Source: Pseudomonas aeruginosa PAO1 (GTDB lineage: Bacteria; Pseudomonadota; Gammaproteobacteria; Pseudomonadales; Pseudomonadaceae). From it: a stretch of 64,000 bases of DNA. This document shows, piece after piece, positions 9,660 through 36,606 of this stretch. The stretch is from the NCBI RefSeq assembly GCF_000006765.1, contig NC_002516.2. One strand, written 5' to 3'. A model generated the notes under the pieces. It did not search any database, had not been told where the DNA came from, and saw only the letters and a program-made list of their open reading frames with translations. A program made the translations under genes and the position numbers. Numbering within the stretch: position 1 is the stretch's first letter; each line of letters begins with the position of its first letter.

Positions 9660-11237
9660 TCATTCCCACTCGATAGTCGCCGGCGGCTTGCTCGACACGT
9701 CGTAGGTGACCCGGGAGATACCGGCAATCTCGTTGATGATGCGGTTCGAGACCTTCTCCAGCAGTTCGTAGGGCAGGTGCGCCCAGCGCGCGGTCATGAA
9801 GTCGATGGTCTCCACCGCGCGCAGGGCGACGACCCAGGCGTAGCGACGGCCGTCGCCGACCACGCCGACCGATTTCACTGGCTGGAACACCACGAACGCC
9901 TGGCTGGTCTTGTGGTACCAGTCGAAGGCGCGCAGTTCCTCGATGAAGATGTGGTCGGCCTGGCGCAGCAGGTCGGCGTACTCCTTCTTCACCTCGCCGA
10001 GGATGCGCACGCCCAGGCCCGGGCCGGGGAACGGGTGGCGGTAGACCATGTCGTAGGGCAGGCCCAGCTCCAGGCCGATCTTGCGCACTTCGTCCTTGAA
10101 CAGTTCGCGCAGCGGCTCGACCAGTTCGAACTGCATGTCCTCCGGCAGGCCGCCGACGTTGTGGTGCGACTTGATCACGTGGGCCTTGCCGGTCTTGGCG
10201 CCGGCCGACTCGATCACGTCGGGGTAGATGGTGCCCTGGGCGAGGAACTTCACGTCCTGCAGCTTGGTGGCTTCTTCGTCGAAGACTTCGATGAAGGTGC
10301 GGCCGATGATCTTGCGCTTCTCTTCCGGGTCGGCGACGCCGGCCAGGCGGCCGAGGAACTTGTCCTCGGCGTTGGCGCGGATCACCTTCACGCCCATGTT
10401 CTCGGCGAACATGGCCATCACCTGGTCGCCTTCGTGCAGGCGCAGCAGGCCGTTGTCGACGAACACGCAGGTCAGTTGGTCGCCGATGGCCTTGTGCAGC
10501 AGCGCGGCGACCACCGAGGAGTCCACGCCGCCGGAGAGGCCGAGCAGGACCTTGGAGGAACCGACCTGGGCGCGCACGGTGGCGATGGCGTCGTCGACGA
10601 TGTTCGAGGGGGTCCACAGCGCGGCGCAACCGCAGATGTCGAGGACGAAGCGCGAGAGAATGCGCAGGCCCTGCTTGGTGTGGGTGACTTCCGGGTGGAA
10701 TTGCACGCCGTAGTAGGCGCGGGCATCGTCGGCCATGGCGGCGATCGGGCAGCTCGGGGTGCTGGCCAGGATGTGGAAGCCGGCCGGCATCTCGGTGACC
10801 TTGTCGCCGTGGCTCATCCACACGTCGAGGCCGAGCACGCCGTCGTCGTCCACGTGGTCCTCGATGCCGTCCAGCAGGCGCGCCTTGCCGACCACGTCGA
10901 CGCGGGCGTAGCCGAACTCGCGCAGGTCGGAGCCCTGCACCTTGCCGCCCATCTGCTCGGCCATGGTCTGCATGCCGTAGCAGATGCCGAACAGCGGCAC
11001 CTTCAGGTCGAACACCGCCTGCGGCGCGCGCGGGCTGTCGGCTTCGTGTACCGACTCGGGGCCACCGGCGAGGATGATGCCGCGCGGCGCGAAGGCGATG
11101 ATCGCCTCGTTGCTCATGTCGAAGGGATGGATTTCGCAATACACGCCGATCTCGCGCACGCGGCGAGCGATCAGTTGGGTGTACTGGGAGCCGAAATCGA
11201 GGATCAGGATACGGTGGGCGTGAATGTCTTGGGACAT
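9660..11237 (-). CDS. guaA: GMP synthase (glutamine-hydrolysing)
   Basis: [23 protein letters not shown] and C-terminal KPPATIEWE. Confidence 0.98.
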
Positions 11238-11268
11238 GGCCATCTCTCGCTACGGAATTCGAAAACGA

Positions 11269-11295
11269 CACGGGGCTGAATCGAACAGCCCCGTG
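11269..11295 (-). other. 10-bp hairpin between guaB and guaA
   Basis: CACGGGGCTG/CAGCCCCGTG with a 7-nt loop; only a weak T tract (TCGTTTT) follows on the minus strand. Confidence 0.55.
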
Positions 11296-11316
11296 CAGCA
11301 CTCATTTCAATCAGCC

Positions 11317-12981
<1,665 letters not shown>

Positions 12982-13049
12982 TCACCCAGCGACCGCCCAG
13001 GCGGCGGGACGCCGATTCCAAGAACTATAAAAGTGGGACGGGGGAGAGA

Positions 13050-14027
13050 ATGAAAGGGAGCACTGACCCGCATTCGTCATCCGCAGCCTTGCTCGCGGCG
13101 TTCGGCGCCGCCGTGCTGGACATCAACCGGCTGGCGCGCGACAAGACCCTGGAGCGTTTCCATCGCACCGCGCTGGAACGTCTGCAGCAACTGGTACCGT
13201 TCCAGCGTGCCTGGTGGGGCCGCGCGGCGCTGATCGACGGTGTGCCGGTGGAGCACAGCGCACACCTGTTCAACCTCGAAGAGCACTATGTGGAGGACTG
13301 GAAATCGATCAGCCACGACGACATTACCGTCGGCCTGGTACACGCCCGCCCGGGCACCGCCGTGGCCGTTGACATGCAGGCCACCGCCGGGCTGCGCTGG
13401 CTTGGCGCGCGTCACGACATCGGTGAGCTGCTCTGCGTGATCCACGTCGATCCGATCACCCGCCTCAGCGACCATGTCGCCCTCTATCGCACGCCTGGCG
13501 GCCCGCCCTTCGCGGACCAGGAGAAGCTGCTCCTCGGGCAACTCTCGGCGCACCTGGCCGCGGCCGTCTCGGCCAACCAGATCCGTACCCTGGTGGCCCT
13601 GCGCGAATCCCTCGAACGCCAGGCTCTGGCCATGGCGGTATGCGACCGCTACGGCGTGCTGCATTGCGCCGAACGCGGCTTCGTCGACCTGCTGCTCGGC
13701 GCCTGGCCGGGCTGGACCGGTCCGCAGTTGCCGGAGGAAACCAGCCCGCAGGGCTATCGCGATGCGCGCCTGGTGATCGACTCGCGGCAGGTCGGCGACC
13801 TCTACCTGCTCACCGCGCGGCAACCGAGCGCGATCGAACAGTTGAGCAATCGCGAAGGCGACGTCGCCCTGCTGTTCAGCGAAGGCAAGACCTACAAGCA
13901 GATCGCCCGCGACCTCGGCCTGGCGCCGAACACCGTGCGCCATCACATACGCACCATCTATTCCAAGCTCGGCGTCAACGACAAGGCGAGCATCGCCCAC
14001 CTGCTGCACCAGTTCCCGCCTGGCTGA
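13050..14027 (+). CDS. LuxR-type transcriptional regulator with a C-terminal HTH and N-terminal sensor region
   Basis: LSNREGDVALLFSEGKTYKQIARDLGLAPNTVRHHIRTIYSKLGV. Confidence 0.85.
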   Translation: MKGSTDPHSSSAALLAAFGAAVLDINRLARDKTLERFHRTALERLQQLVPFQRAWWGRAALIDGVPVEHSAHLFNLEEHYVEDWKSISHDDITVGLVHARPGTAVAVDMQATAGLRWLGARHDIGELLCVIHVDPITRLSDHVALYRTPGGPPFADQEKLLLGQLSAHLAAAVSANQIRTLVALRESLERQALAMAVCDRYGVLHCAERGFVDLLLGAWPGWTGPQLPEETSPQGYRDARLVIDSRQVGDLYLLTARQPSAIEQLSNREGDVALLFSEGKTYKQIARDLGLAPNTVRHHIRTIYSKLGVNDKASIAHLLHQFPPG

Positions 14028-24583: not shown

Positions 24584-25345
24584 ATGACCGACTTCACCCA
24601 AGCCATCCCCGTTCTCCCGGAGCCCGACTGGCACGCCGTGGCCGGCATCCCCATCGTCGATGCCGGCACGCCGCTGGAGGCGCTCGGGCTGAGCCGCGAG
24701 TTCAGCGTCTGGCCGGCCTACCACAAGCTCGGCATTCCTCACGCGATCCCGGAGTGCCACGCTCGCGGCGAGGTCTTCGAGCGTCTCCTGCGGGTCGCCG
24801 CCGCCCTCCCCGGCGGCGTGCGCCTGGTGGTGCTGGACGCCTGGCGGCCGTTCGCCGTGCAGCAGTATCTCTACGACAGCCTGTCCAGCGCCCTGGCCGC
24901 GCACTACCCACGGGCCGGCGAGGCCGAGCTGGAACGGCTCACCCGCCAGTTCGTCTCGCCGCCGAGCAGCAGCCGCGAGGCGCCCAGCCCGCATCTCACC
25001 GGCGGCGCGGTGGACGTCACCCTGTGCGACGCCCAGGGCCGCTGGCTGGACATGGGCAGCGCCTTCGACGAAGCTGTGCCGGCCTCCTACACCGCCTACT
25101 TCGAACGCCTGGCGGAGCCCGACACGCGCCAGCGACGCGTCCGCGATCACCGTCGTCTGCTCTATCACGCGATGCTCGACGCCGGTTTCAGCAACCTGCC
25201 CAGCGAATGGTGGCACTACGATTTCGGCGACCAGCTCTGGGCCTGGCACACCGGCGCGACGCAGGCGCTGTTCGGCCCGGTGCAGTTGCAGGCGATGGAC
25301 GCGCTCTGGCGCCAGCAGTTGCAGAAGCGCCCTCCGGCGGACTAG
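24584..25345 (+). CDS. M15D (VanX/DdpX-like) D-Ala-D-Ala dipeptidase-family metallopeptidase
   Basis: LDAWRP, SPHLTGGAVD and EWWHYD zinc motifs; no signal peptide visible. Confidence 0.82.
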   Translation: MTDFTQAIPVLPEPDWHAVAGIPIVDAGTPLEALGLSREFSVWPAYHKLGIPHAIPECHARGEVFERLLRVAAALPGGVRLVVLDAWRPFAVQQYLYDSLSSALAAHYPRAGEAELERLTRQFVSPPSSSREAPSPHLTGGAVDVTLCDAQGRWLDMGSAFDEAVPASYTAYFERLAEPDTRQRRVRDHRRLLYHAMLDAGFSNLPSEWWHYDFGDQLWAWHTGATQALFGPVQLQAMDALWRQQLQKRPPAD

Positions 25346-26295
25346 GAGGCGAAGGCGCGCCGGTAGCCCAGCGGCGGCAGGCCGAACGCGGCGGAGAACT
25401 GCTGGCGCAACGACACCGCCGAACCGAAGCCGGCCAGCCCGGCGATCGCCTGCACCGAATGCTCGGTGGTTTCCAGCAGGCGCTGGGCCAGGGCCAGGCG
25501 TTCGGCCTGCAGCCACTGGCTGACGGTGGTGCCGGTGAGCTGGCGGAAATGCCGGGTGAAGGTCCGCCGGCTCATCAGCACCCGCTGTGCCAGGCTGTCC
25601 AGGCTGTGCGCCTGGTCGAGGTTCTGCCGCAGCCACACCAGCAGCTCGCCGAGACGGCCGTCCTGGGCACTGTCCGGCAGCGGCTGCTCGATGAACTGGG
25701 CCTGGCCGCCCTGTCGATGAGGCGCCACCACCAGGCGCCGGGCCAGGTGATTGGTAGTCTGCGCACCGAGCCGCTGGCGGACCAGGTGCAGACAGCAGTC
25801 GATGCCGGCGACGGTGCCTGCCGAGGTCAGCAGGCCGTCGTCCTCGATGTACAGCACGTCGGGCTCCACCCGCACCGCAGGGAAGCGCCCGGCGAAATCC
25901 TCCGCCCACATCCAGTGGGTGGTGGCGCGGCGACCGTCGAGCAACCCGGCCTCGGCCAGCACGAAGGCCCCCAGGCACAAGCCCACCAGTTGCGCACCGC
26001 GTGCACGGGCCGCGATCAACGCATCCAGCAGCGCTTGTGGCGGACGCTCGTGTGGATCGCGCCAGCTCGGCACGATCACGGTCTGCGCCTCGGCCAGCGC
26101 TTCCAGCCCGGCCTCGGCCTCGATGGTGAACCCCACCGTGGTTCGCAGCCGGCCCGGCTCGGCGGTGCAGACACGCAGGTCGAAGGCCTGCGCGCAGGGG
26201 TCGTAGCACTCCTGGCCGAACACCAGGCAGGGCACCGACAGGTGGAACGGACTGATGCGGTCGAAGGCCACCACGGCCACGGACTGGCGGGACAT
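25342..26295 (-). CDS. AraC-family regulator with DJ-1/PfpI domain (GlxA/FtrA type)
   Basis: GLCLGAFVLAEAGLLDGRRATTHW, TSAG..AGID and RQGGQAQF, plus the AraC HTH. Confidence 0.92.
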   Translation of the reverse strand: MSRQSVAVVAFDRISPFHLSVPCLVFGQECYDPCAQAFDLRVCTAEPGRLRTTVGFTIEAEAGLEALAEAQTVIVPSWRDPHERPPQALLDALIAARARGAQLVGLCLGAFVLAEAGLLDGRRATTHWMWAEDFAGRFPAVRVEPDVLYIEDDGLLTSAGTVAGIDCCLHLVRQRLGAQTTNHLARRLVVAPHRQGGQAQFIEQPLPDSAQDGRLGELLVWLRQNLDQAHSLDSLAQRVLMSRRTFTRHFRQLTGTTVSQWLQAERLALAQRLLETTEHSVQAIAGLAGFGSAVSLRQQFSAAFGLPPLGYRRAFAS

Positions 26296-26415
26296 GCACA
26301 CCTCGGTGGGTATGAGCGGGTTGGCCCGATTCTAGCGAAAGTTGTCTCTCAGGCCACTCACTCGCTACGCCGCGCCGGGACCAGAATCTGCCTCACCCAC
26401 TCAGGAGGAAACGCC

Positions 26416-27045
26416 ATGTCCGCACGTCAACCCAAACGCGCCTTGCTGGTCATCGACGTACAGAACGAATACGTCAGCGGCAACCTGCGTATCGAATTTC
26501 CCGCCATCCAATCGTCGCTGGAACGCATCGGCGCCGCCATGGATGCCGCCCACGCGGCGGGCATCCCGATCGTCGTGGTGCAGCACCTGGCACCGGCGGA
26601 CTCGCCGTTGTTCGCGCGCGGCAGCCGGCAGGCCGAGCTGCACGAGGTGGTCGCCTCGCGGCCCTACCAGCACAAGGTGGAAAAGCAACTGGCCAGTTCC
26701 TTCGTCGGCACCGGGCTGGCCGACTGGCTGCGCGAGCGCGGTATCGACACCCTCGCCGTGGTCGGCTACATGACCCAGCACTGCGACGACTCGACCATCC
26801 GCCAGGCGATCCACGAAGGCTGGCAGGTGGAATACCTGCACGACGCCAGCGGCTCGGTGCCCTACCGCAACCGCGCCGGCCAGGCCAGCGCGGAAGAGAT
26901 CCACCGGATCTTCGGCATCGTCCTGCAGTCCTCCTTCGCCGCCGTGCTCAGCACCGAGGAGTGGCTGGAAAGCCTCGCCGGCCGGCACGTTCCGGAACGC
27001 GACAACATCTACGACTCCAACCAGCGAGCCCTGGCCAACCGCTGA
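26416..27045 (+). CDS. Isochorismatase-family cysteine hydrolase
   Basis: ALLVIDVQNEY and VGYMTQHCDDST; AGGAGG RBS. Confidence 0.9.
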   Translation: MSARQPKRALLVIDVQNEYVSGNLRIEFPAIQSSLERIGAAMDAAHAAGIPIVVVQHLAPADSPLFARGSRQAELHEVVASRPYQHKVEKQLASSFVGTGLADWLRERGIDTLAVVGYMTQHCDDSTIRQAIHEGWQVEYLHDASGSVPYRNRAGQASAEEIHRIFGIVLQSSFAAVLSTEEWLESLAGRHVPERDNIYDSNQRALANR

Positions 27046-27050
27046 AACGG

Positions 27051-27074
27051 CGCCGCCCCCCACGCGGGGCGGCG
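27051..27074. terminator. Hairpin between convergent genes
   Basis: CGCCGCCCC/GGGGCGGCG 9-bp stem. Confidence 0.55.
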
Positions 27075-27079
27075 AGCGC

Positions 27080-27652
27080 TCAGCCGACCAGCGAGCCGCG
27101 CGCCGGCAACGGCTTCCAGCCCGGGAACTCGCGCAGCCGCGGGTCGGGCACCGCGCAATAGGCGAATGTCCAGTTCGGCGCCGGCAGGTCCAGGCGCTCC
27201 AGCGGCACACGCGTGCCGGCGCCGGCCTGCGGCGCCTTCCAGTCCTGGGTGATGTGCGCACCGCCCTGGCTGGCCAGGAGGATGCCGCGGTTGGCGCTGG
27301 TGTCGTCCACCGTCCAGCGCGCGGCGGAGGCGTCCATCAGCACCTCCAGATGCTCGTCGGTCACCTTGGCGCCGAACGGCGACTGCAACAGCCAGCAGTA
27401 CAGGCGCAGGTGCATCGCCCAGTTCCAGGCGGCCTTCTGCTCGGCCGCCCATTGCAGGAAACCACGGAGGATGGTCAGGCCATCCGGCGGATCGATCTTC
27501 AGCAGTTCCGGGCAAAGGTCGTAGAGATGGTGCCAGGCGCTGCTCAGGCGCTTGTTGAGCTGGTCCGGACGCAGGGTGGAGTTCTTCGGCGGCAGGCCGG
27601 GAGCCACCACCAGGCCGGTCTGCGCCGGCAAGGGATATCTGTTGCTGTTCAT
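27080..27652 (-). CDS. MbnC-like (methanobactin biosynthesis cassette / AZL_007950-type) protein
   Basis: 190 aa with a GAGG RBS. Blocks WHHLYDLCPELL, FLQWAAE, WLLQSPF, MDASAARW and FPGWKPLP match, in order, Methylosinus MbnC as I recall it. No alignment was computed. Confidence 0.75.
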   Translation of the reverse strand: MNSNRYPLPAQTGLVVAPGLPPKNSTLRPDQLNKRLSSAWHHLYDLCPELLKIDPPDGLTILRGFLQWAAEQKAAWNWAMHLRLYCWLLQSPFGAKVTDEHLEVLMDASAARWTVDDTSANRGILLASQGGAHITQDWKAPQAGAGTRVPLERLDLPAPNWTFAYCAVPDPRLREFPGWKPLPARGSLVG

Positions 27653-27708
27653 GCTCTGAACCTCGCACGCAAAGGCGGGGCGCCGGGCGCCCCTGCTCGA
27701 CACGGCGC

Positions 27709-28185
27709 TCAGTGGCCGTGCTGCTCGTGCCCGCCCTGTTCGGCCGGCGCCTTGGACTCGACGACGATTTCCACCGGCACGTCGCCGGCCTTGCGGAAAT
27801 GCAGCGTCAGCGGGAAGCGCTCGCCGGCCACCAGTGGCTGCTTCAGGCCCATCAGCATCAGGTGGTAGCCGCCGGGAGCGAAGCGCAGGTCCTTGCCTGG
27901 TGCGACGTCGACGCTGTCGACTTTCTGCATGCTCATCATGCCGTTCTTGTGCACATGCTCGTGCACCTCGGCGGAAGCCGCGCGCGGCGTGTCGGCGCCA
28001 AGCAGGGTGTCGTTTTCCTTGCCGTGGTTCTGCACCACGAAGTAGGCCGCGCCGTTCGGCGAGGTCGGCGGCAGGGCCAGCGCCCAAGGATGCTCGATGT
28101 GCAGTTGGCCGGCGTTGTACTCGTGGGCCTGGGCGAAAGCGGAAACGGCCAGCAGGGCCGCGGCAGCGAAGAAGGATGTGCGCAT
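27709..28185 (-). CDS. Periplasmic copper chaperone PCu(A)C
   Basis: Signal peptide; HEH..GMMSM...PGGYHLML (H-x10-M-x21-H-x-M pattern); His-rich tail. Confidence 0.92.
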   Translation of the reverse strand: MRTSFFAAAALLAVSAFAQAHEYNAGQLHIEHPWALALPPTSPNGAAYFVVQNHGKENDTLLGADTPRAASAEVHEHVHKNGMMSMQKVDSVDVAPGKDLRFAPGGYHLMLMGLKQPLVAGERFPLTLHFRKAGDVPVEIVVESKAPAEQGGHEQHGH

Positions 28186-28314
28186 GGTGACTCTCCAGTA
28201 GCGTATGACCGGTCTTTTTCCGTCGGACCGGCGATTCCAGGGGGGAAGCTAGGGTATTGCGCCGCGACCTGCCCCGACCCGAAGGTCCAGGTTGTCGAAG
28301 GCGCGGGGGAGGAG

Positions 28315-28704
28315 TCAGGCGACAGGAGAAGCGCGCGGATTGGCGAGGCGCCAATAGCGCAGGGGAGGCAGGTCGGTGGCGGAGAAGGCGTTACGGGCAG
28401 GGCTGGCCAGCGGCGCCAGCGGCAATGCCGGCCAGGAGGCGACCAGTCCGGGCGTGCCGGCGGCGCCGGCGCAGCAGCAGAGGTGCGGGGCCAGGCTCTC
28501 GTGGTCGTCGGGAAGATCGATGTCCTTGAGCGCGGCACCCAGCTTCAGGCGCAGCAGCGAATCGGACGAGGTGCTGCAGAAGCCACCGAGCAGCAACGAG
28601 GCGCGCTCCTGCGTCGTCAGCGCCTGCGAAAGCGGCACCACGAACAGGTTCATCAGCACGGCCAGGCTGGCCAGCCAGGCCACGGGGCGCCGTGACAGGG
28701 GCAT
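28315..28704 (-). CDS. DUF2946-type leader protein (N-terminal TM, Cys cluster, C-terminal PRASP)
   Basis: GGAG RBS; RRPVAWLASLAVLMNLFVVPL TM segment; GFCST; HLCCC; ends ANPRASPVA. Confidence 0.72.
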   Translation of the reverse strand: MPLSRRPVAWLASLAVLMNLFVVPLSQALTTQERASLLLGGFCSTSSDSLLRLKLGAALKDIDLPDDHESLAPHLCCCAGAAGTPGLVASWPALPLAPLASPARNAFSATDLPPLRYWRLANPRASPVA

Positions 28705-28875
28705 CGTCGGTTCTCCGGAGAATGGGCCCTTTATGCCTGAGCGCGGGGCAAAAGTAAAAACGCCGGGCGCGACAGAGTGCCGCAGGTGAAAACGTTTGCA
28801 ACCCTTGCGGGCTTTCCCCCGCCGCGCTCTTCCGCCAGCATAGACGGCTTTGACGCCCGACGAGTCGAGAAGCCG

Positions 28876-29724
28876 ATGCCCCGCACCCTAGCCTTCGTTT
28901 CCACGCTGTTGCTCGCCGCTTTCTGCGCCCTGCCCGCCCAGGCCGACAGCTTCATCATGCGCCTGCTGAACAAGCCGGTGCCCGGCGGGGTGGCGGTGGT
29001 CGACCTCGGCGAGGAAGGCCCGCCGCCGCGGGCCTTCTACCAGGGCAAGCCGGTGCTGGTGGTGCGCGAGGAAGGCCGCCGCTGGATCGCCGTGGTCGGC
29101 ATCCCGCTGAGCACCAAGCCCGGCCCGCAGAAGCTGGAAGTGCGGGCGGCAACCGGCAACCACGAGGAACGCTTCAGCGTCGGCAGCAAGCACTACCGCG
29201 AGCAGCGCATCACCCTGAAGAACAAGCGCCAGGTCAATCCGCTGCCGGAAGACCTCAAGCGCATCGAACGCGAACTCGCCGAGCAGACCGCCGCCTACCG
29301 CCGCTTCAGTCCCGGCCTGCCCAGCAACCTGATGCTCGACAAGCCGGTCGACGGTCCGCTCTCCAGCCCCTTCGGCCTGCGCCGCTTCTTCAACGGCGAA
29401 GAGCGCAACCCGCATTCCGGTCTAGACTTCGCGGTACCGGCCGGTACGCCGATCAAGGCGCCGGCGGCCGGCAAGGTGATCCTCATCGGCGACTACTTCT
29501 TCAATGGCAAGACGGTGTTCGTCGACCATGGCCAGGGCTTCATCAGCATGTTCTGCCACCTGTCGAAGATCGACGTGAAGCTCGGCCAGCAGGTGCCGCG
29601 CGGCGGCGTACTCGGCAAGGTCGGCGCCACCGGCAGGGCCACCGGACCGCACATGCACTGGAACGTCAGCCTGAACGACGCGCGAGTCGACCCGGCGATC
29701 TTCATCGGTGCCTTCCAGCCCTGA
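28876..29724 (+). CDS. M23-family peptidase
   Basis: Signal peptide; HSGLD (HxxxD) and GPHMH (HxH). Confidence 0.9.
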   Translation: MPRTLAFVSTLLLAAFCALPAQADSFIMRLLNKPVPGGVAVVDLGEEGPPPRAFYQGKPVLVVREEGRRWIAVVGIPLSTKPGPQKLEVRAATGNHEERFSVGSKHYREQRITLKNKRQVNPLPEDLKRIERELAEQTAAYRRFSPGLPSNLMLDKPVDGPLSSPFGLRRFFNGEERNPHSGLDFAVPAGTPIKAPAAGKVILIGDYFFNGKTVFVDHGQGFISMFCHLSKIDVKLGQQVPRGGVLGKVGATGRATGPHMHWNVSLNDARVDPAIFIGAFQP

Positions 29725-29763
29725 GAAGTGAGCAACGCGGCGCCGGCTGAGGTCAGAAGGAAC

Positions 29764-29788
29764 AGGGGGCGCGTCGATGCGCCCCTTT
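29764..29788 (+). terminator. Possible terminator after the M23 peptidase
   Basis: GGGGCGC/GCGCCCC stem followed by a short TTT. Confidence 0.45.
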
Positions 29789-29809
29789 CATGACCAAGGG
29801 AGACACCGC

Positions 29810-30205
29810 ATGACTCACCCGCTTCGCCTGCTCTGGCTGTGCTCGACACTGTTCGTGGTCCTCGGCCTGGGCTTCGTCTTCTTCCCCGGCCCGCTCGCCT
29901 CCCTGCTCACCAGCGGCGAACCGCTCACCCCCGCCGCCCTCACCGACCTGCGCGCCAGCTACGGCGGCACCAGCTTCGGCATCGGCCTGCTGCTCGGCTA
30001 TGCCGCCCTGCGCCCCCGCTACCTGGTGCTCGGCCTGCTCGCCGCCCTGGCGGTGATCGCCAGCGGCGGCGCGGCGCGCCTCTACGGTGTGCTGATCGAC
30101 GCCTCGCCGGCGCTAACCACCTTCCTCTGGCTCGGCGCCGAGGCGCTGCTCTGCGTGCTGTTGCTGGCGGCACTCTGGAAGACCCGCCAGCTCGACCTCG
30201 ACTGA
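29810..30205 (+). CDS. Small 4-TM membrane protein (DUF4345-like)
   Basis: LTDLRASYGG motif and hydrophobic helices; GGGAG RBS. Confidence 0.65.
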   Translation: MTHPLRLLWLCSTLFVVLGLGFVFFPGPLASLLTSGEPLTPAALTDLRASYGGTSFGIGLLLGYAALRPRYLVLGLLAALAVIASGGAARLYGVLIDASPALTTFLWLGAEALLCVLLLAALWKTRQLDLD

Positions 30206-30222
30206 GCGCCGGGCAGCAGGTC

Positions 30223-31638
30223 TCAAGCCAGGACCCGGCGAACCGCCGGCAGCCGCGACAGCACCAGCCAGTCCAGCGCCCAGACCAGCAGGAGCGAGGC
30301 CCCCACCAACGGGAAGGCCACGCCCAGCGCCAGCATGATGGCGATGCCGGTCTTCCAGCGCGGCAGCTCGTGGCGCAGCGGCGGCACGCCAAGGCGTCCG
30401 GCCGGCTTGCGCTTCCACCAGATCCACAGGCCGCTCGCCGAGCTGAGCAGGATCGCCAGGCAGACCGCGAGCATCAGCAACTGGTTGCCGAGGCCGAAGA
30501 GCTTGCCTTCGTGCAGCACGACGCCCATCTGCACGCTCCTCGCCACCGCGTTGTAGTCCTGCCAACGCACGTCGGCGAGAACCTTGCCGCTGTACTGGTC
30601 GATGTGCAGGGTGGCGTCGTGGCGCGGATCGTCGGGGAACACGGAAATCGTGTAGACCCCCTCCATCCCGCTCGGCAGGGCGATCCCGTAGCCCGCCGCC
30701 ACGCCGCGCTCGCGGGCGATATCCACCACCCTTTGCAGAGGGATGCCCGCCGGCATCGGCATGTCCATCGGCATCGCGTGCCCGGCCTGGGCGGAATGCC
30801 CGCGATGCTCGGCATGGGCGTCGGCCGCCGGCGGCTGCGAGCGCGGCAGCGGAGTGTTCTCCAGCGGCCAGGGCACCTGCTGGCGCGACGCGCTGTTGAG
30901 GCTACCGGCCTGCATGTCGGAGGTCGGCACATCGTTCCACATCGCCGCCGGGAAACGGTTCCAGACATCGGCGAACTGCTTGCCCCAGTAGCCGGTCCAG
31001 GTCATCCCGCTGAGCAGCATGAAGAGCAACAGCAGGCTGCCCCAGAAACCGGCGAGCACATGTAGCTCGCGCCACAGCGGTCGTCCGCGCAGGTGCAGGC
31101 GCGGCCAGAACAGCGCGCTCGCCGCCCGCCCGCGCGGCCACCATAGGTAGAGACCGGAGACCACCAGGACGATGCCCCAGCCGGCGGCCAGCTCGATCAG
31201 CCGGTCGCCGACGGTCCCGACCATCAGCTCGCCATGCAGTGCCCGGGCCACCGCCTGGAGATTCAGCTGCGCATCCTGGCGGCCGAGTTCGCGCCCGCTG
31301 TAGGGATCGACGAAGAGGTTCCATTGCCTGCCCTCTTCGCCAATCACGAATTGCGCGCTGCGCCCCGCCTCGCTCGGCGGCAGGTACTGGCTGACGGCGG
31401 CCTGCGGGTGCGCCTGGCGCACCCCGACGAGCAACTGGTCGGCGCTGCGCATCTGCGCACCGGCCTCGACCCGCAGCAGTTGCGGATAGAGCAGCGCATC
31501 CAGTTGCGGCTTGAACAGGTAGACGATTCCGGTCAGCGCCAGCAGGATCATGAAGGGCGCGACGAACAGGCCAGCGTAGAAATGCCAGCGCCAGGCCAGC
31601 GCGTAGAAGTCACGGCCGTTCTTTTCGTTCGATTGCAT
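30223..31638 (-). CDS. PepSY-associated TM helix protein (PepSY_TM)
   Basis: WRWHFYAGL, LHGEL, SGLYLWWPR, LHVLAGFW, LHEGKLFG; His/Met-rich periplasmic loop. Confidence 0.9.
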   Translation of the reverse strand: MQSNEKNGRDFYALAWRWHFYAGLFVAPFMILLALTGIVYLFKPQLDALLYPQLLRVEAGAQMRSADQLLVGVRQAHPQAAVSQYLPPSEAGRSAQFVIGEEGRQWNLFVDPYSGRELGRQDAQLNLQAVARALHGELMVGTVGDRLIELAAGWGIVLVVSGLYLWWPRGRAASALFWPRLHLRGRPLWRELHVLAGFWGSLLLLFMLLSGMTWTGYWGKQFADVWNRFPAAMWNDVPTSDMQAGSLNSASRQQVPWPLENTPLPRSQPPAADAHAEHRGHSAQAGHAMPMDMPMPAGIPLQRVVDIARERGVAAGYGIALPSGMEGVYTISVFPDDPRHDATLHIDQYSGKVLADVRWQDYNAVARSVQMGVVLHEGKLFGLGNQLLMLAVCLAILLSSASGLWIWWKRKPAGRLGVPPLRHELPRWKTGIAIMLALGVAFPLVGASLLLVWALDWLVLSRLPAVRRVLA

Positions 31639-31702
31639 GGATCACCTCATCGGAGCGCACACAGGCAAGGCGGGCCCCGCTGGACGGGGCCTCGTTGAAG
31701 GT

Positions 31703-33874
31703 TCAGAAGCTGAAGTCGACCTTGGTCCAGAAGGTCCGGCCCGGCTCTGGAACCGTTTCGTTGGCGGAGAAACCGAAGCCGGCGTCGCCGGCCTTGTTCA
31801 GGTGCTCGGTGTAATCCTTGTCGAACAGGTTATCGACACCGGCGCTCAGCTTGACGTTGCGAGTCACCCGGTAGGCGCCGTTGAGCGAGAAGACGCCGAA
31901 GCCGGCGCTCTTGTCGAAGTCCTTGCCGACCACGTTGCCCTGGTCCCTGGCGATGCGATTCTGCGGCGCGACCACCCGCCACAGGCTGCCGGCACTCCAG
32001 TCGCCTTCCTCGTAGGTCAGGCCGAAGCGCGCTTCCAGCGGCGGGATCTGCGGCAGCGCGCGGTCGTCCGAGCTGTTCTTGCCCCAGGCATAGGCCAGGC
32101 TGGCGTCGGTCTTCCAGTTGCCGGTGAGCTGGTAGGAAGCGCCCAGCTCGCCGCCCATGATCCGCGCGTCGACGTTGGTCGCCTGGGTCGAGGAACCCAT
32201 CATGCCCTCGCGATAGCTGAACAGGATGAAGTCCTGGACCACCCCGACGTAGCCGGAGGCCCAGGCCTGCAGCTTGTCGCCGTTGTACTGGAGGCCGAAG
32301 TCGAGCTGGGTGGTCTTTTCCGGCTTGATCTTGTCGAAGGCGTTGACCGACCCGTTCGGCCCGCGCTTGGGCGAGAACAGCTCCCAGTAGTCGGGGAAGC
32401 GCTCGGCATGGCCGAGGCCGGCGTAGAGGGTGGTCGGCGAGTCGGCGAGGTCGTGCTCGTAGCGCACGAAGCCGCTGGGCAGGGTATCGGCGCGGGTGTC
32501 GTTGGCCGTCGGGTTGGCCATGGCGTGGCCCATGTGCCCGGACTTCAGGGTCTGCCGGTAGTCCTTGACCGAGGCGCGGTCCAGGCGCAACCCGCCGATC
32601 AGCCGGTCGCGCTCGGCGGCGAACCAGGTCAGTTCGCCGAAGGCCCCGTAGTTGTGGAACACCGCGTCCTTGCTCCAGGGGAACTGGTCGGCGTCGGTGT
32701 AGTAGTCGGTCATCATGTCGTACTTGGAGCCGCGCGCGCGGTGCTCGTTGCGCATGGCGTCGACCCCGGTGACCAGCTTGAAGTCGTCCCAGCGCCAGGT
32801 GGCCGCCAGGCGACCGCCGAGGGTGCGTCGGTCCACCTGGGACGCCATCGGCATGGGCATCATGCTGGATGGGTCGGGAGTGCGCAGGCGGAAGTTGTCC
32901 ATGATGTGGTCGGCGTAGTTGTAGTAGACCTGTGCCTCGACCTTCTCCAGCACATCGCTGACGTTCGATTTGACGAAGCGCAGGCCCAGGCTCTCGCGCT
33001 TGAACTGCGAGCCGTCCATGCCGCGCCCGGCGTAGCGTGCCTCGCCGTCGCCCTTGCCGGCGGTGAGTTCGATCAGGGTGTCCTCGTCGGGGGTCCAGCC
33101 GACCGCGACGTCGCCGTTCCACTTCTTCCAGCGCGACGGCACGGTATTCCCGGCGCCGTCCTCGTAATCGTCGGACTGCGCGTGGTTGCCGGTGAAGCGC
33201 AGGTAGCCGAGCCGGTTGCCGGCGGCGGCGTCCAGCACCTTGTCGAAGCGGCCATTGGAGCCGGCCAGCAGGCTGGCGTTGACCCGCGAGCCGAGTTCGC
33301 CGAAGCGCTCCGGCTCACGCTCGAAGAGGATCGTCCCGGCCGACGCGCCCGGCCCCCAGAGCACCGTCTGCGGGCCCTTGATCACGGTGAGCTTGTCGTA
33401 GGTTTCCGGCGAGATGTAGGAGGTCGGCGCGTCCATCCGGTTCGGACAGGCACCGAGCATCATGCCGCCGTTGGTGAGGATGTTCAGGCGCGAACCGAAC
33501 ATCCCGCGCAGCACCGGGTCGCCGTTGCTGCCGCCGTTGCGGATCACCGCGAAGCCGGGAATGGTCTTCAGGTAGTCGGCCCCATCGCTGGCCGGCACCG
33601 GTTGGCGCGGCTCCTTGGGATTGGTGACGATGGTCAGCGGCGAACTCTGGGCGACTCCGGTGACCACGCTCGGCGCCAGCTCCACGGCGTGATCCTGGTG
33701 CTGTGAGTGTTCCTCGGCCAGGAGCGCCGACGGAGACAGGGCCAGGCCGCACAGTGCGGCGAAGGCTCCCGCCCAGCGGCGGCGTTGTGCGAGACGGGCA
33801 GGGTCGAAGCTGAAAGCGGCGGTCGGGCAGGCGTTGCCGGCCGCTCGTTGTTGAGTAGACATACGTTTTTCCAT
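31703..33874 (-). CDS. oprC: TonB-dependent copper receptor OprC
   Basis: TonB-receptor layout, GACPNRMDAP (CxxxM copper site), Met-rich loops, terminal DFSF. Confidence 0.95.
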   Translation of the reverse strand: MEKRMSTQQRAAGNACPTAAFSFDPARLAQRRRWAGAFAALCGLALSPSALLAEEHSQHQDHAVELAPSVVTGVAQSSPLTIVTNPKEPRQPVPASDGADYLKTIPGFAVIRNGGSNGDPVLRGMFGSRLNILTNGGMMLGACPNRMDAPTSYISPETYDKLTVIKGPQTVLWGPGASAGTILFEREPERFGELGSRVNASLLAGSNGRFDKVLDAAAGNRLGYLRFTGNHAQSDDYEDGAGNTVPSRWKKWNGDVAVGWTPDEDTLIELTAGKGDGEARYAGRGMDGSQFKRESLGLRFVKSNVSDVLEKVEAQVYYNYADHIMDNFRLRTPDPSSMMPMPMASQVDRRTLGGRLAATWRWDDFKLVTGVDAMRNEHRARGSKYDMMTDYYTDADQFPWSKDAVFHNYGAFGELTWFAAERDRLIGGLRLDRASVKDYRQTLKSGHMGHAMANPTANDTRADTLPSGFVRYEHDLADSPTTLYAGLGHAERFPDYWELFSPKRGPNGSVNAFDKIKPEKTTQLDFGLQYNGDKLQAWASGYVGVVQDFILFSYREGMMGSSTQATNVDARIMGGELGASYQLTGNWKTDASLAYAWGKNSSDDRALPQIPPLEARFGLTYEEGDWSAGSLWRVVAPQNRIARDQGNVVGKDFDKSAGFGVFSLNGAYRVTRNVKLSAGVDNLFDKDYTEHLNKAGDAGFGFSANETVPEPGRTFWTKVDFSF

Positions 33875-33932
33875 GATCTATGTGACTTCCGCCCCGCCCC
33901 CACGGCGAGCAGGCACCCGGCCAGGCTCGCGT

Positions 33933-33959
33933 CACCGGCGCGGCGAAGACGCGCCGGTG
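33933..33959 (-). promoter_or_regulatory. 10-bp hairpin in the DUF2946-oprC spacer
   Basis: CACCGGCGCG/CGCGCCGGTG perfect stem with a 7-nt loop. Confidence 0.55.
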
Positions 33960-33994
33960 CCCCCAGGAAGCGGCGGCTATCGGATTGAAAGAGG

Positions 33995-34456
33995 TCAGGC
34001 GATCAGGAACGGCGGCGCACGGGTACGGGCGCCGGGAAACACCGGCGAGGCGACGAACGCCTCGTTCAGGAAAGCGACGGCGGGCGCCGTCGCGAAGGGA
34101 ACGGAGAACAGCGCCAGGCAGGCGTCTTCGGTGAGCGGCGGGCTGTGGAACAACAGGCTGCAATAACCGCACTTCTCCCAGAGCACGTCGCTGGCCAGGC
34201 GATTGCCTTCCTCGCCGCCCATCCCCGGCATGCCGGCATGGACGACGGAGCGCTGGGCATCGGAACAGCCGGCATGGGCCATGTCGCCATGGTCCATGTT
34301 CTCGTGGGACATGCCTTCGTGGCCCATCCCCACGCCCATCGGCATCGGGTGGTCCATCGGCATCGACTGGGAGATCAGCGGCCCGACGAAGATCATCAGC
34401 ATGGCGAACAGAGCCAGCCATGCACCGATGCCTTGTCGTTTCAGAGTGGTCGCCAC
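33995..34456 (-). CDS. DUF2946-family (CruR-like) leader protein with CxxC and RAPP
   Basis: GTG start with GGAG RBS; N-terminal TM; Met/His-rich segment; KCGYC; ends GARTRAPPFLIA. Confidence 0.85.
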   Translation of the reverse strand: MATTLKRQGIGAWLALFAMLMIFVGPLISQSMPMDHPMPMGVGMGHEGMSHENMDHGDMAHAGCSDAQRSVVHAGMPGMGGEEGNRLASDVLWEKCGYCSLLFHSPPLTEDACLALFSVPFATAPAVAFLNEAFVASPVFPGARTRAPPFLIA

Positions 34457-34744
34457 CTGCGACTCCCGCCGTCTTGAATGAAGACCACCGCGTAGCGGGC
34501 CGGATGGCCGCTCGCGCCGGGTCATGCCGAAAAGAAGAATGCGCCTGTCGTTATACGCCCCAGGCACGGGGAACGAAATGATCGCACAAGGGCGGCTGGC
34601 TCTTCTGCGGCATGGGGCCGCAGAATTTTCCGTTGCGGAGAGCGTGCCGGCGGCGCAATCGAGGACAAGCTTTCACCGCAGAGAAAGAATAAAAACCCAC
34701 AAAAGCCGCACAAATGGGAAATTCTACTAATTTTCCTTTAATGC

Positions 34745-34773
34745 TTGCCATTCAAATGCAGTCTCACTAGTGT
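34745..34773 (+). promoter_or_regulatory. sigma70 promoter upstream of the leuA leader
   Basis: TTGCCA-17 nt-TAGTGT, preceded by an A/T-rich tract. Confidence 0.6.
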
Positions 34774-34780
34774 GGTACGC

Positions 34781-34858
34781 ATGAAAACACCACACACCCT
34801 CATCCTGCTCCGCCAACACGCCTGCCTGTGCCTGGTCAGCCCGCGACTGCGTGGCTGA
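34781..34858 (+). CDS. Putative leuA leader peptide (25 aa, 6 Leu)
   Basis: [25 protein letters not shown]; below the size cut-off of the ORF track. Confidence 0.6.
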
Positions 34859-34935
34859 GCGACGCTTCTCTTCATCTCGTCACTGCGTTCGCCTGGCCCC
34901 GCCGGCCCAGGAACCGACTCCAAAGGATTAGCCCC

Positions 34936-36606
34936 ATGAGCATGTTGAAAGACCCTTCGCAGAAATACCGCCCATTCTCGGCCATCAATCTGCCCGACCG
35001 CACCTGGCCGTCGAAGACCATCACCGAGGTGCCGATCTGGTGCAGTTCCGACCTGCGCGACGGCAACCAGTCGCTGATCGAACCGATGGACGCGGCGAAG
35101 AAGATGCGATTCTTCAAGACCCTGGTGCAGGTCGGCCTGAAGCAGATCGAAGTGGCCTTCCCGTCGGCTTCCGATACCGACTTCAACTTCGTCCGCGAGT
35201 TGATCGAAGGCAACCACATCCCGGACGACGTCACCATCCAGGTGCTGACCCAGGCCCGCGAAGACCTGATCACCCGCACCTTCGAATCCCTGCGCGGGGC
35301 GAAGAAGGCCATCGTCCACGTCTACAACGCCACCGCCCCGTCGTTCCGCCGCATCGTCTTCAACCAGGACAAGCAGGGCGTCGTGGACATCGCCACCAAC
35401 GCCGCGAAACTGATCAAGAAGCTGGCCGCCGAGCAACCGGAGACCCAGTGGTCGTTCCAGTACTCGCCGGAAATCTTCAGCTCTACCGAGCTGGAGTTCT
35501 CGGTGGAGGTCTGCAACGCGGTGATCGACGTCTGGCAACCGACCCCGGACAACAAGATCATCCTCAACCTGCCGGCCACCGTGGAGTGCGCCACGCCGAA
35601 CGTCTACGCCGACCAGATCGAATGGTTCGGCCGCCACGTCGACAAGCGTGACAGCGTGATCATCAGCCTGCACACCCACAACGACCGTGGCACCGGCGTG
35701 GCCGCCACCGAGCTGGGCCTGATGGCCGGCGCCGACCGCGTCGAAGGTTGCCTGTTCGGCAACGGCGAGCGCACCGGCAACGTCGACCTGGTGACCCTGG
35801 CCTTGAACATGTACACCCAGGGCCTGCATCCGCAACTGGACTTCTCCGACATCGACGCGGTGCGCAAGGTGGTCGAAGAGTGCAACCAGTTGCCGGTCCA
35901 CCCGCGCCATCCATATGTCGGCGACCTGGTCCATACCGCTTTCTCCGGCTCGCACCAGGATGCCATTCGCAAGGGCTTCGCCCAGCAAAAGGAAGACGCG
36001 ATCTGGGAAGTGCCGTACCTGCCGATCGATCCGGCCGACATCGGCCGCGACTACGAAGCGGTGATCCGGGTCAACAGCCAGTCCGGCAAGGGCGGCATCA
36101 CCTTCCTGCTCGAACAGGAGTACGGCATCAGCCTGCCGCGGCGCATGCAGATCGAGTTCAGCCAGGTAGTGCAAGGCGAGACCGACCGTCTCGGCCTGGA
36201 AATGACCGCACAACAGATCTACTCGCTGCTGGAAAACGAATACCTCAAGGCGACCTCGCCCTACGTCCTCGCCAGCCATCGCCTGCAGGAAGAGAACGGC
36301 ACCAGCGCCGTCGACCTGGAAGTCTCCTTCGACGGCGAGAAGCAGCACTGGCGCGGGATCGGCAAGGGACCGCTGGAAGCCTTGGTGGCCGCCCTGCCGG
36401 TCAAGGCGGAAATCATGGACTACCATGAGCACGCCATCGGCGCCGGCGCCAATGCCAAGGCCGCGGCCTATATCGAGATCCGCCTGGAGGGCCAGCGCCC
36501 GCTGCACGGCATCGGCATCGACGAGAACATCACCACCGCCAGCTTCCGCGCCCTGTTCAGCGCGCTGAACCGCGCGGTGACCCAGGCCGAGGCCAAGGCG
36601 GCCTGA
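34936..36606 (+). CDS. leuA: 2-isopropylmalate synthase
   Basis: DLRDGNQ, HTHNDRG and GNGERTGN; AAGGA RBS before ATG at 34936. Confidence 0.97.

Follow-up and report, generated by a model that had tools for sequence, protein, structure and literature searches.

Described relatives of the MbnC-like protein and its leader

The protein analysed here shares its fold with MbnC of the methanobactin synthase MbnBC (TIGR04160; PDB 7FC0, 7TCR and 7DZ9), and both are tied to copper acquisition. To our knowledge, the only described role of MbnC is to serve MbnB, an iron enzyme, as an obligatory partner in producing copper-chelating peptides. Distant MbnC relatives 'with high Pseudomonas representation' were noted by Kenney and Rosenzweig (2013) and correspond to the TIGR04061 model ('AZL_007950 family'). 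This model and the Pfam family PF27805 ('MbnC-like') span MbnB-linked as well as orphan proteins, and in neither is the orphan clade described below set apart. Other partners of MNIO enzymes, including the DUF2063 proteins (PME-type 1), are likewise non-catalytic and present peptide substrates to the enzyme; for a DUF2063 protein, part of the structure is reported to match MbnC. Unlike the orphan clade, DUF2063-type partners are encoded beside their own MNIO, and our literature search yielded no account of a conserved clade of MNIO partners standing on their own.

The second point of comparison is CruR, a published copper-sensing leader ORF with a Cys motif and a C-terminal arrest motif, which heads operons such as cruR-crtA-crpH in Bordetella pertussis and cruR-oprC in P. 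aeruginosa. In Bp2923/CruR, the CXXC motif occupies residues 90-93 and the RAPP motif residues 139-142; in the published model, Rho-dependent termination acts in the long spacers that follow cruR homologues. The published CruR synteny comprises genes for TBDT, PepSY_TM, Sco, PCuAC, YcnI, CopC, MbnPH-like and AhpC_TSA proteins. An MbnC-like gene is absent from it, and many other copper operons headed by DUF2946 leaders are described without one. The earlier synteny surveys would have missed the family if no Pfam model existed at that time, as is likely.

The MbnC-like gene and its operon

The window, a 64-kb stretch of P. aeruginosa PAO1 DNA, carries a three-gene operon, DUF2946-PCuAC-MbnC-like, in which the MbnC-like gene comes last and which has a probable terminator at its end. 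Its elements and those of a neighbouring copper-uptake operon, the latter assigned from Pfam families and from gene calls on identical P. aeruginosa contigs, are listed below.

28315..28704, minus strand: DUF2946 gene, candidate CruR-type copper-sensing leader ORF (PA3786-like), 129 aa, gene 1 of the operon; PF11162, E = 3.7e-16
28186..28314, minus strand: leader-to-PCuAC spacer, 129 nt (C = 49, G = 35), with a C-rich 5' end, starting CTCCTCCCCCGCGCC
27709..28185, minus strand: PCu(A)C periplasmic copper chaperone (PA3785-like), 158 aa; PF04314, E = 1.6e-40, full model; N-terminus resembling a signal peptide (MRTSFFAAAALLAVSAFAQA)
27653..27708, minus strand: PCuAC-to-MbnC-like spacer, 56 nt, with a GC-rich hairpin (stem GGGGCGCC/GGCGCCCC) and an RBS
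27080..27652, minus strand: MbnC-like protein (PA3784-like), 190 aa, without signal peptide, of the orphan (MbnB-less) clade
27051..27074, no strand assigned: strong GC hairpin, probable two-way terminator, between the convergent MbnC-like and isochorismatase genes
30223..34456, minus strand: neighbouring copper-uptake operon
33995-34456, minus strand: candidate DUF2946/CruR-type leader of the oprC operon, called as a 153-aa gene
31703-33874, minus strand: OprC TonB-dependent copper importer
30223-31638, minus strand: PepSY_TM protein

The initial annotation had placed a 190-aa ORF 56 nt downstream of PCuAC, on the same strand and with its own RBS. This is borne out by the coordinates (ATG at 27650-27652, TGA at 27080-27082) and by a GAGG 8 nt ahead of the ATG. 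That annotation was silent on the strand; the operon is on the minus strand. Gene calling based on GC3, which was used for rough maps only, chose an antisense shadow ORF over the real MbnC-like gene.

The ORF is clearly an MbnC homologue, with a similarity far above chance. The protein is a full-length member of TIGR04061 (E = 4.5e-70; 234.7 bits against a cut-off of 124.15; model positions 2-164 of 164) and, according to precomputed Pfam matches, of PF27805. It also matches the MbnC model TIGR04160 (E = 7.7e-41), although its 139.6 bits remain below the equivalog cut-off of 185. A phmmer comparison with MbnC chains in the PDB gave E-values of 2.9e-26 (7fc0_F) and 9.2e-22. When an AF2 model of the protein (pLDDT 83) was submitted to Foldseek, E-values below 0.3 were obtained only for four MbnC chains, the best match being 7fc0_C (TM 0.74, rmsd 2.2 Å, 34% identity to RrMbnC). 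Both the profile search and the structural superposition that had been proposed as checks on the initial annotation thus point to MbnC. Similarity to DUF2063 was found neither in Pfam nor with Foldseek. The five blocks that the annotation had aligned with Methylosinus MbnC (WHHLYDLCPELL, residues 40-51; FLQWAAE, 65-71; WLLQSPF, 87-93; MDASAARW, 106-113; FPGWKPLP, 176-183) indeed lie opposite the Methylosinus blocks given there, which occur verbatim in the alignment with 7tcr_C.

Within the species the protein hardly varies. A word-indexed protein search returned P. aeruginosa copies only, 32,675 sample blocks contain the window protein in exactly this form, and the P. aeruginosa sequence is essentially unchanged over tens of thousands of samples.

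No DUF692 gene and no precursor peptide had been seen nearby, and dedicated profiles gave the same picture. An MbnB profile built from 27 MbnB sequences, run with filters off against the six-frame translation of the whole 64-kb window, gave a best E-value of 4, and an MbnA profile returned noise only (best E = 3.7), although it recovers MbnA in 25 of the 27 MbnB-containing loci at E ≤ 2e-12. Every small ORF between 27040 and 28900 is embedded in another frame of a real gene. Unlike true MbnC genes, the window gene neither adjoins nor overlaps an mbnB, and mbnA and a MATE exporter are missing as well; DUF2946 precedes it, in the place of the MbnA-MbnB found ahead of MbnC.

On the minus-strand transcript, the hairpin at 27051..27074 reads CGCCGCCCC...GGGGCGGCG followed by CCGUUUC. 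It folds at -32.8 kcal/mol (z = -2.18; as stable in 5 of 200 shuffles) and probably closes the operon as a two-way terminator. The hairpin in the PCuAC-to-MbnC-like spacer, on the other hand, is no better than shuffles (71-nt fold, -29.9 kcal/mol, z = -1.15). Between 26300 and 29000, a promoter consensus scan returned nothing and a terminator scan returned three matches, within the shuffle expectation (mean 1.7), the hairpin after the MbnC-like gene not being among them. An Rfam search of 25000-36000 detected no riboswitch or other RNA family, and no motif of at least 9 nt is common to the sequences ahead of the two DUF2946 operons. The PA14_15120-15130 genes have been reported to behave as a single operon, and the oprC-PA3789 operon has already been described.

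As in CruR-led operons, a DUF2946 leader comes first in the window operon and copper-acquisition genes lie downstream. Like CruR leaders, the window leader combines an export signal with a Cys motif, has a C-terminal arrest motif at the conserved distance and is followed by a long spacer. The distance from its CCC motif (76-78) to its RASP motif (124-127) is 48 residues, only 2 residues follow the latter, and an N-terminal in-to-out TM helix has been reported for PA3786. The oprC gene is preceded by a cruR homologue according to the published CruR work. The called gene of this leader begins 37 codons into a 190-aa ORF (33995-34567), in whose numbering CGYC stands at 133 and RAPP at 183, a spacing of 50. 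More generally, a Cys motif and RA(S/P)P are 46-50 residues apart in 71 of the 82 DUF2946 ORFs from the related loci and the window. Leaders of MbnC-like loci carry NPRA(S)P and often CCC, where CruR has RAPP and CXXC. Judged from these sequence features, CruR-type copper-sensing leader ORFs are a better explanation of the two DUF2946 genes than precursors with Cys residues, and the 129-nt spacer at 28186..28314 is a putative site of Rho-dependent termination.

The assignment of the gene to a copper operon in the initial annotation agrees with the presence of both PCuAC and a CruR-type leader. That this operon is also under copper control is suggested by the leader features and by one indirect transcriptome: upon exposure to the thiol chelator N-acetylcysteine, PA3784, PA3785, oprC and PA0433/PA0434 (another DUF2946-TBDT pair) are up while copA1 and copZ are down, a pattern that we read as a copper-depletion signature. 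A role in handling chelator-bound copper imported via OprC, as proposed in the initial annotation, is at odds with published work according to which OprC takes up copper in unchelated form. The supplements of the OprC paper do not mention the operon genes, and a literature search on the function of PA3784 retrieved nothing.

MbnB-linked and orphan branches of the family

The sample, drawn from 79 genomes and the window, comprises 83 relatives. The genome scan was seeded with an 11-sequence alignment, whose pattern YWHxL[FY]DxCP misses P. aeruginosa itself, which has AWHH. An alignment of 40 sequences had been tried as seed and was dropped as too diverse.

Two architectures emerged. Twenty-seven relatives adjoin MbnB and form a single clade (type A), whereas the remaining 56, all from Pseudomonadaceae, have no adjacent MbnB (type B), and for 53 of these no MbnB lies within 10 kb. 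One branch of the tree splits type A from type B with a support of 100/99. The NCBIfam MbnC equivalog divides the types cleanly, as type A scores 287-297 bits with TIGR04160 and type B 131-145 bits, on either side of the cut-off. MbnA is likewise absent within 10 kb of the type B genes, except at three loci that hold a complete MbnA-MbnB-MbnC set. A type B gene and a true MbnC occur together within approximately 8 kb in three genomes (L003, L039 and L053), and the two are therefore not interchangeable. Both types are under purifying selection (median dN/dS: type A, 0.26; type B, 0.23).

The window protein lies on the non-MbnB side of the tree, on a long branch (1.08); its group also holds L057 and L016/L023/L028 and stands apart from the main orphan clade of 51 members. 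The description 'orphan MbnC-like protein' in the initial annotation is thus correct in that the gene is a homologue lacking MbnB and MbnA. It is no stray MbnC, however, but a member of a separate conserved orphan clade below the equivalog cut-off and, as the neighbourhood survey revealed with its 56 MbnB-less genes, not a one-off. The clade and its genomic context appear to be new to the literature; the family itself is already in Pfam and NCBIfam.

A same-strand DUF2946 gene is found upstream of 51 of the 56 type B genes, directly so for about 49, as well as upstream of the divergent metagenomic relatives P0017 and P0022; metagenomic relatives with DUF2946 directly upstream are only about 37% identical. 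The MbnC-like gene is often the sole gene behind the leader, while in P. aeruginosa and L057 PCuAC stands between the two. Leader subtypes (CPxC, CCC, CGYC) and copy number differ among closely related MbnC-like genes, for instance between L037 and L053, and in one clade the MbnC-like gene is kept behind a leader without the arrest motif. Recurring neighbours are SCO1 with PCuAC, cytochrome bd I/II, and TBDT-MbnP-MbnH. The cytochrome bd adjacency is weak evidence, involving a 505-nt gap and closely related Stutzerimonas genomes.

The window protein and MbnC have a common core consisting of YWHxLFDxCP, R63, W87, W113, D117, the W138-K139 hairpin and a C-terminal FxxW. Nearly all residues that are invariant in true MbnC are also invariant in the orphan clade (YWHxLFDxCPxLL, R63, W78, W87, W113, D117, G123, F176, W179 and the W138-K139 hairpin); a docking partner resembling MbnB is therefore possible. 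The hairpin, in the region of interface II, aligns with residues 151-156 of RrMbnC, the deletion of which yields insoluble protein.

Two other functional elements of MbnC appear lost or remodelled. Its N-terminal segment docks MbnB (interface I), and deletions over this region abolish MbnB binding or solubility, while residues 158-162 of Mt MbnC, in the G-[GA]-R-E-[IV]-E region, form the strand that pairs with the leader peptide. The N-terminal motifs and the G-[GA]-R-E-[IV]-E strand of type A are absent or remodelled in type B, and neither element is conserved in the window protein. At equal MSA depth, AF2 predicts the N-terminal helices and a strand at 153-157 for a true Pseudomonas MbnC, whereas the model of the window protein lacks these helices (residues 1-18 at pLDDT < 50) and has no strand between 139 and 162. 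This contrast is between two AF2 models from shallow alignments, and the window protein sits on a long branch.

Type B has motifs of its own, namely LPFPDYPxNAR, C85-R86, PPxPWDFAWCPL and FRRWL. The window protein keeps K52, D54-P55, W161, F163 and C166 of these type B features; its N-terminal type B motif is degenerate, Y85-C86 replaces C85-R86, and FPGW is type A-like. Cys85, His81 and Cys166 are found in 49, 38 and 35 of the 56 type B proteins, the corresponding type A residues being Tyr, Tyr/Asp and Phe, respectively. Cys166 is Ser and His81 is Tyr in 18 of the 56 each. His41 and Cys47 are invariant in type B and MbnC alike; the Cys and His residues of the window protein in question are H41, H42, C47, H81, C86 and C166. 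A gained metal site at columns 81, 85 and 166 was considered and is not relied on, the columns being too variable.

Possible roles of the orphan MbnC-like proteins

On balance, we consider it probable that the window gene encodes a neo-functionalised, MbnB-independent MbnC paralogue: a cytoplasmic, non-catalytic protein of the MbnC fold, made in copper limitation. The clade of paralogues to which it belongs spans the Pseudomonadaceae and, having neither MbnB nor MbnA, has parted from the methanobactin machinery. The DUF2946 leader peptide would gate the operon, with the ribosome stalling at the C-terminal RA(S/P)P motif and transcription going on only if the Cys motif of the leader finds no copper, so that the MbnC-like protein would be made when copper is scarce. 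It would then be produced together with periplasmic PCuAC and in step with the neighbouring OprC importer. The conserved helical core may have been kept as a binding scaffold whose ligand is now something other than MbnB or MbnA. A role in copper economy under limitation is suggested, most plausibly by supplying respiratory cuproenzymes with copper or by sparing them, because SCO1, PCuAC, OprC-type receptors and the copper-free cytochrome bd recur as neighbours.

In two other readings the protein still serves a peptide. According to the initial annotation, it might work in trans with a DUF692 enzyme encoded elsewhere. It would then dock this distant DUF692/MNIO and guide it, when copper is limiting, to a substrate that contains Cys, giving a copper-binding RiPP; the candidate in P. 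aeruginosa is the MNIO linked to the EfhP-type precursor. Conservation of the invariant MbnC core and W-K hairpin, under purifying selection as strong as in real MbnC, would fit such a role. We nevertheless regard it as unlikely, because the orphan proteins form a separate clade, score below the MbnC equivalog cut-off, coexist with genuine MbnC beside Mbn operons, and have docking and leader-pairing regions that are neither conserved nor predicted. Moreover, MNIO subgroups pair with specific partners, EGKCG-type enzymes using DUF2063 and MbnC-type partners being tied to methanobactin-type clusters, and outside the three full MbnA-MbnB-MbnC loci no MbnA-like peptide lies within 10 kb of an orphan gene. 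The other reading, also raised in the initial annotation, takes the DUF2946 products as Cys-containing leaders bound by the MbnC-like protein. Although CruR-type leader ORFs describe these genes better than precursors do, binding itself stays a minority possibility, of low probability: the protein could bind the nascent chain or signal-anchor in the cytoplasm, as MbnC binds its leader peptide, and either modulate ribosome arrest or export, with feedback on copper sensing as a result, or offer the Cys motif for modification. The tight pairing with a leader directly upstream, which extends to the metagenomic relatives, the frequent occurrence of the MbnC-like gene alone behind it, the nature of MbnC as a peptide-binding module and the many MNIO substrates that are exported proteins with signal peptides all speak for such binding. 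Yet leaders head many copper operons that have no MbnC-like gene, PCuAC separates the two genes in P. aeruginosa and L057, and the variation in leader subtype and copy number (L037 versus L053) looks like cassette exchange and not like co-evolution. The orphan proteins, moreover, are least conserved in the leader-pairing strand, and the MbnC-like gene persists where the leader has lost its arrest motif. If binding does occur, a copper sensor based on ribosome arrest would have acquired an MNIO-partner fold as its reader or modulator, yielding a two-component post-transcriptional copper-starvation module that is Pseudomonadaceae-wide and part of the P. aeruginosa core genome.

Two further explanations concern the protein by itself. 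The orphan clade might have gained a Cys/His site and act as a cytoplasmic Cu(I) buffer, chaperone or sensor in copper limitation. The type B-specific Cys85, His81 and Cys166 on top of the invariant His41 and Cys47 would be in keeping with this, but the replacement of Cys166 and of His81, each in 18 of the 56 proteins, the position of the window cysteine at 86 instead of 85, and the equal invariance of His41 and Cys47 in MbnC, for which two structure papers describe no metal site, make it rather improbable. The absence of MbnB and MbnA and the long branch of the window protein could also be those of an evolutionary relic of a lost methanobactin cluster with no present function. This we judge very improbable in view of a dN/dS of 0.23, 56 intact copies over the Pseudomonadaceae with clade-specific conserved motifs, the near-invariance in P. 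aeruginosa, and a gene with its own RBS in a terminated operon that is co-regulated with its neighbours.

The NCBI product name 'putative natural product biosynthesis protein' is not supported for the orphan clade and probably misleads for some two thirds of the family members sampled. The MbnC-like family would also join the set of genes under CruR-type leader ORFs. Copper supply to respiratory and denitrification enzymes matters for the growth of P. aeruginosa under host copper restriction, and the gene belongs to the core genome of this species, beside OprC and co-transcribed with PCuAC. A conserved clade under selection that lacks enzyme and peptide alike, and that is still found in copper-acquisition loci, points to a second use of the MbnC fold in copper physiology.

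MbnC likeness and genomic setting of the orphan gene

The likeness to MbnC, the partner subunit of the DUF692/MNIO enzyme MbnB, that the initial annotation had seen in a 190-aa ORF is borne out by profile, pairwise and structural comparison. The NCBIfam model TIGR04061 gives a full-length match of 234.7 bits against a cut-off of 124, and the MbnC equivalog TIGR04160 reaches 139.6 bits, under its cut-off of 185. A phmmer comparison with PDB sequences returned MbnC chains only (7fc0, 2.9e-26; 7tcr, 9.2e-22), and the Methylosinus blocks quoted in the initial annotation are present exactly in the alignment. The AF2 model (pLDDT 83, pTM 0.80) superposes on the MbnC of 7FC0 with a TM score of 0.74 and an rmsd of 2.2 Å; a structure search with this model retrieved no non-MbnC structure under E=0.3. 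The precomputed Pfam assignment is PF27805, 'MbnC-like', and the NCBI product name is 'putative natural product biosynthesis protein'. The relevant genes are the following.

27080-27652, minus strand: MbnC-like ORF, 190 aa, ATG at 27652, stop at 27080-27082
27709-28185, minus strand: PCuAC gene, 56 nt upstream of the MbnC-like ORF
28315-28704, minus strand: DUF2946 gene, 129 aa, upstream of PCuAC
28876-29724, plus strand: M23 peptidase gene (PA3787-like), between the two copper operons
29777-30205, plus strand: DUF4345 membrane protein gene, between the two copper operons

The MbnC-like start codon has a GAGG 8 nt to its 5' side, and the 129-nt spacer between DUF2946 and PCuAC is C-rich. After the MbnC-like stop comes a strong GC hairpin (-32.8 kcal/mol, z=-2.2) and then a convergent isochorismatase gene, so that the unit comprises three genes. 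Beyond this unit, on its strand, lie a second DUF2946 gene, OprC and a PepSY_TM protein. Gene order and published tables, in which the locus numbers stand beside the same products, equate the ORF with PA3784/PA14_15130. Publications on the CtpA protease refer to PA3787 repeatedly.

Between PCuAC and the MbnC-like gene (27653-27708, minus strand) runs a GC-rich inverted repeat, GGGGCGCC/GGCGCCCC, whose folding energy is no better than that of shuffled sequence (z=-1.15). L057 is architecturally the operon's closest relative; there a predicted secreted protein of 148 aa (9495-9941) lies between these two genes, its stop overlapping the TTG start of the MbnC-like gene.

The orphan status claimed initially holds within the window. 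A profile of 27 MbnB sequences found no match when all 64 kb were searched in six-frame translation, even with filters off, and an MbnA precursor profile, which recovered the precursor in 25 of the 27 MbnB-containing loci at E<=2e-12, yielded only noise there.

MbnB-linked and MbnB-less members of the family

When 1.8 billion cluster representatives were searched exhaustively with HMMER, only 98 clusters matched at E<=1e-3, the closest being ~40% identical once P. aeruginosa fragments of the same protein were set aside. Scanning one genome per species yielded 79 loci, all ORFs of which were profile-searched. Two types of gene emerged. Type A (n=27; Methylocystis, Azospirillum, Comamonas, Thauera, Achromobacter, Gallionella and a few Pseudomonas) has MbnB directly upstream of or overlapping the MbnC gene, with MbnA 5' of MbnB in 25/27 loci. 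Type B (n=56, window included) is exclusive to Pseudomonadaceae and lacks an adjacent MbnB; a same-strand DUF2946 gene precedes it in 51/56 cases, and divergent metagenomic relatives of the window protein again stand behind a DUF2946 gene. Equivalog scores do not overlap (287-297 bits for type A versus 131-145 for type B), and a single branch with support 100/99 separates the types in a maximum-likelihood tree. The window protein sits on a long branch with L057 and three further loci (L016/L023/L028), between the main 51-member B clade and the A clade.

In three genomes (L003, L039, L053) a type-B gene lies ~8 kb or less from a complete MbnA-B-C set, and the two types are accordingly paralogues that differ in role. 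Two genomes each carry two type-B copies (L009 and L047 in P. paraveronii; L019 and L052 in P. morbosilactucae), every copy behind its own DUF2946 leader and the partners in different subclades. More distant PF27805 members are MNIO-linked again. One example is the metagenomic cluster L082 (108-3980), in which a 31-aa ORF, two MNIO genes in a row (383 and 268 aa), an MbnC-like gene and a MATE exporter follow one another; it resembles Vibrio-type methanobactin-like clusters. Three proteins of 438-445 aa (P0073, P0082, P0098), in which the MbnC-like region occupies ~280-405, may be MbnB-MbnC fusions.

Both types share many invariant residues, namely YWHxLFDxCPxLL, R63, W78, W87-L88, W113, D117, G123, W138-K139, F176 and W179. 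Conservation of two further elements is confined to type A: the N-terminal 'LLxAL.VP' segment and, after the W-K hairpin, G-[GA]-R-E-[IV]-E, which reads G-T-R-V-P-L in the window protein and is affected by deletions in the main B clade. Both elements have functions in published MbnC structures. Removal of the first 12 residues of VcMbnC abolished MbnB binding, and RrMbnC without its first 28 residues was insoluble. The strand pairing with the MbnA leader in Mt MbnC consists of residues 158-162, which align by phmmer with about residues 147-151 of the window protein. For a genuine Pseudomonas MbnC (L003) modelled at the same alignment depth, AF2 predicts N-terminal helices at 12-15 and 21-26 and a strand at 153-157 with pLDDT ~93; in the window protein, by contrast, residues 1-18 fall under pLDDT 50 and no strand is predicted within 139-162. 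As this compares predictions, one of them for a long-branch protein, it is supportive rather than conclusive.

DUF2946 leaders and copper-related neighbours

Roy et al. described the Bordetella DUF2946 protein Bp2923 (CruR) as an upstream ORF whose nascent exported product senses copper via CXXC; copper relieves ribosome arrest at a C-terminal RAPP, leading to Rho-dependent termination before downstream copper-uptake genes. The published synteny list of CruR operons does not contain the MbnC-like gene. In the loci examined, 71/82 DUF2946 ORFs combine a Cys motif (CPxC, CCC or CGYC) with a terminal RA(S/P)P, 46-50 residues apart (mode 48). Both window copies conform: CCC76 to RASP124 in the PCuAC operon (48 residues) and CGYC133 to RAPP183 on the OprC side (50 residues). 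For PA3786 an N-terminal TM helix oriented in-to-out is reported, and the deletion mutant shows normal growth.

The DUF2946 protein at 28315-28704 (minus strand) carries three consecutive Cys (HLCCCAG) in place of CXXC, and NPRASP where CruR has RAPP, with the 48-residue spacing kept; about a dozen further loci also have a leader of this 'CCC' subtype. In one Pseudomonas clade (L007, L008, L015, L020; ~9355-10929), the DUF2946 ORF that precedes the MbnC-like gene departs from the usual sequence after '...CKA' and has no arrest motif, perhaps owing to a frameshift. The end of the MbnC-like ORF (10516) is exactly the start of another DUF2946 ORF, of the classical CGYC...RAPP kind.

The transcriptome of P. 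aeruginosa under N-acetylcysteine shows PA3784, PA3785, oprC and PA0433/PA0434, another DUF2946-TBDT pair, going up and the CueR-controlled efflux genes copA1 and copZ going down. We read this pattern as a sign of copper depletion. In another study PA14_15120-PA14_15130 appear as a single uncharacterised operon whose genes are co-regulated.

In 23/56 type-B loci a PCuAC gene occurs at a distance of 4 kb or less. Fluorescens-type genomes carry SCO1 and PCuAC divergent from DUF2946, MbnC-like and DUF2165 genes, in that order. In Stutzerimonas the DUF2946-MbnC-like pair is followed, after a 505-nt gap, by subunits I and II of cytochrome bd oxidase, a copper-free terminal oxidase; L040 and 15 other loci, mostly Stutzerimonas, have these subunits downstream on the same strand (~10967-13760). 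In L003 (9280-19421) the orphan pair precedes DUF2946-TBDT-MbnP-MbnH-MbnA-MbnB-MbnC, the predicted MbnA being MSIKIAKKYTLQIAGRAGACCASCCAPLGVN; L039 and L053 likewise hold the pair and a complete cluster of this composition in one region. All these neighbours (SCO1, PCuAC, cytochrome bd, TBDT-MbnP-MbnH) concern copper acquisition or copper-short respiration.

A proposed role in copper economy

Although built on the same scaffold, the window protein lies outside MbnC proper, lacking its three tested defining features (equivalog score, adjacent mbnB, mbnA); it belongs to the broader TIGR04061/PF27805 family, which is catalogued and was noted in 2013 as distant, Pseudomonas-rich relatives of MbnC. 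We found no publication that deals with the MbnB-less clade, with its coupling to DUF2946 or with a function. The reading to which we incline, on balance, is that of a neo-functionalised, MbnB-independent MbnC paralogue: because a CruR-type leader would gate the operon, the protein would be made when copper is limited, acting as a putative non-catalytic binding protein in copper economy.

Action in trans with an MNIO encoded elsewhere in P. aeruginosa would explain the retained MbnC core and W-K hairpin, and such an enzyme is probably present; however, MNIO subgroups are specific for partner type, the protein fails the equivalog cut-off, its interfaces are remodelled and the orphan type coexists with true MbnC, making this explanation unlikely. 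A direct role with the DUF2946 peptides, to which the tight pairing of the two genes points, we likewise regard as unlikely, since the leader cassettes are variable and the peptide-pairing strand is poorly conserved. Leader type and number differ among closely related MbnC-like genes, and the same subtypes also head other operons in these loci, which fits a regulatory cassette better than a substrate that co-evolves. Columns 81, 85 and 166 hint at a Cys/His metal site gained in the orphan clade but vary, and we hold such a site to be improbable. Most improbable is an evolutionary relic: the median pairwise dN/dS is 0.23 in type B (0.26 in type A), type B conserves motifs of its own (LPFPDYPxNAR, C85-R86, PPxPWDFAWCPL, FRRWL) and 32,675 sample blocks contain the P. 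aeruginosa sequence in exactly this form, all of which speaks against a gene in decay. The MbnC-like paralogue, with its putative binding role under copper limitation, belongs to the core genome of P. aeruginosa.
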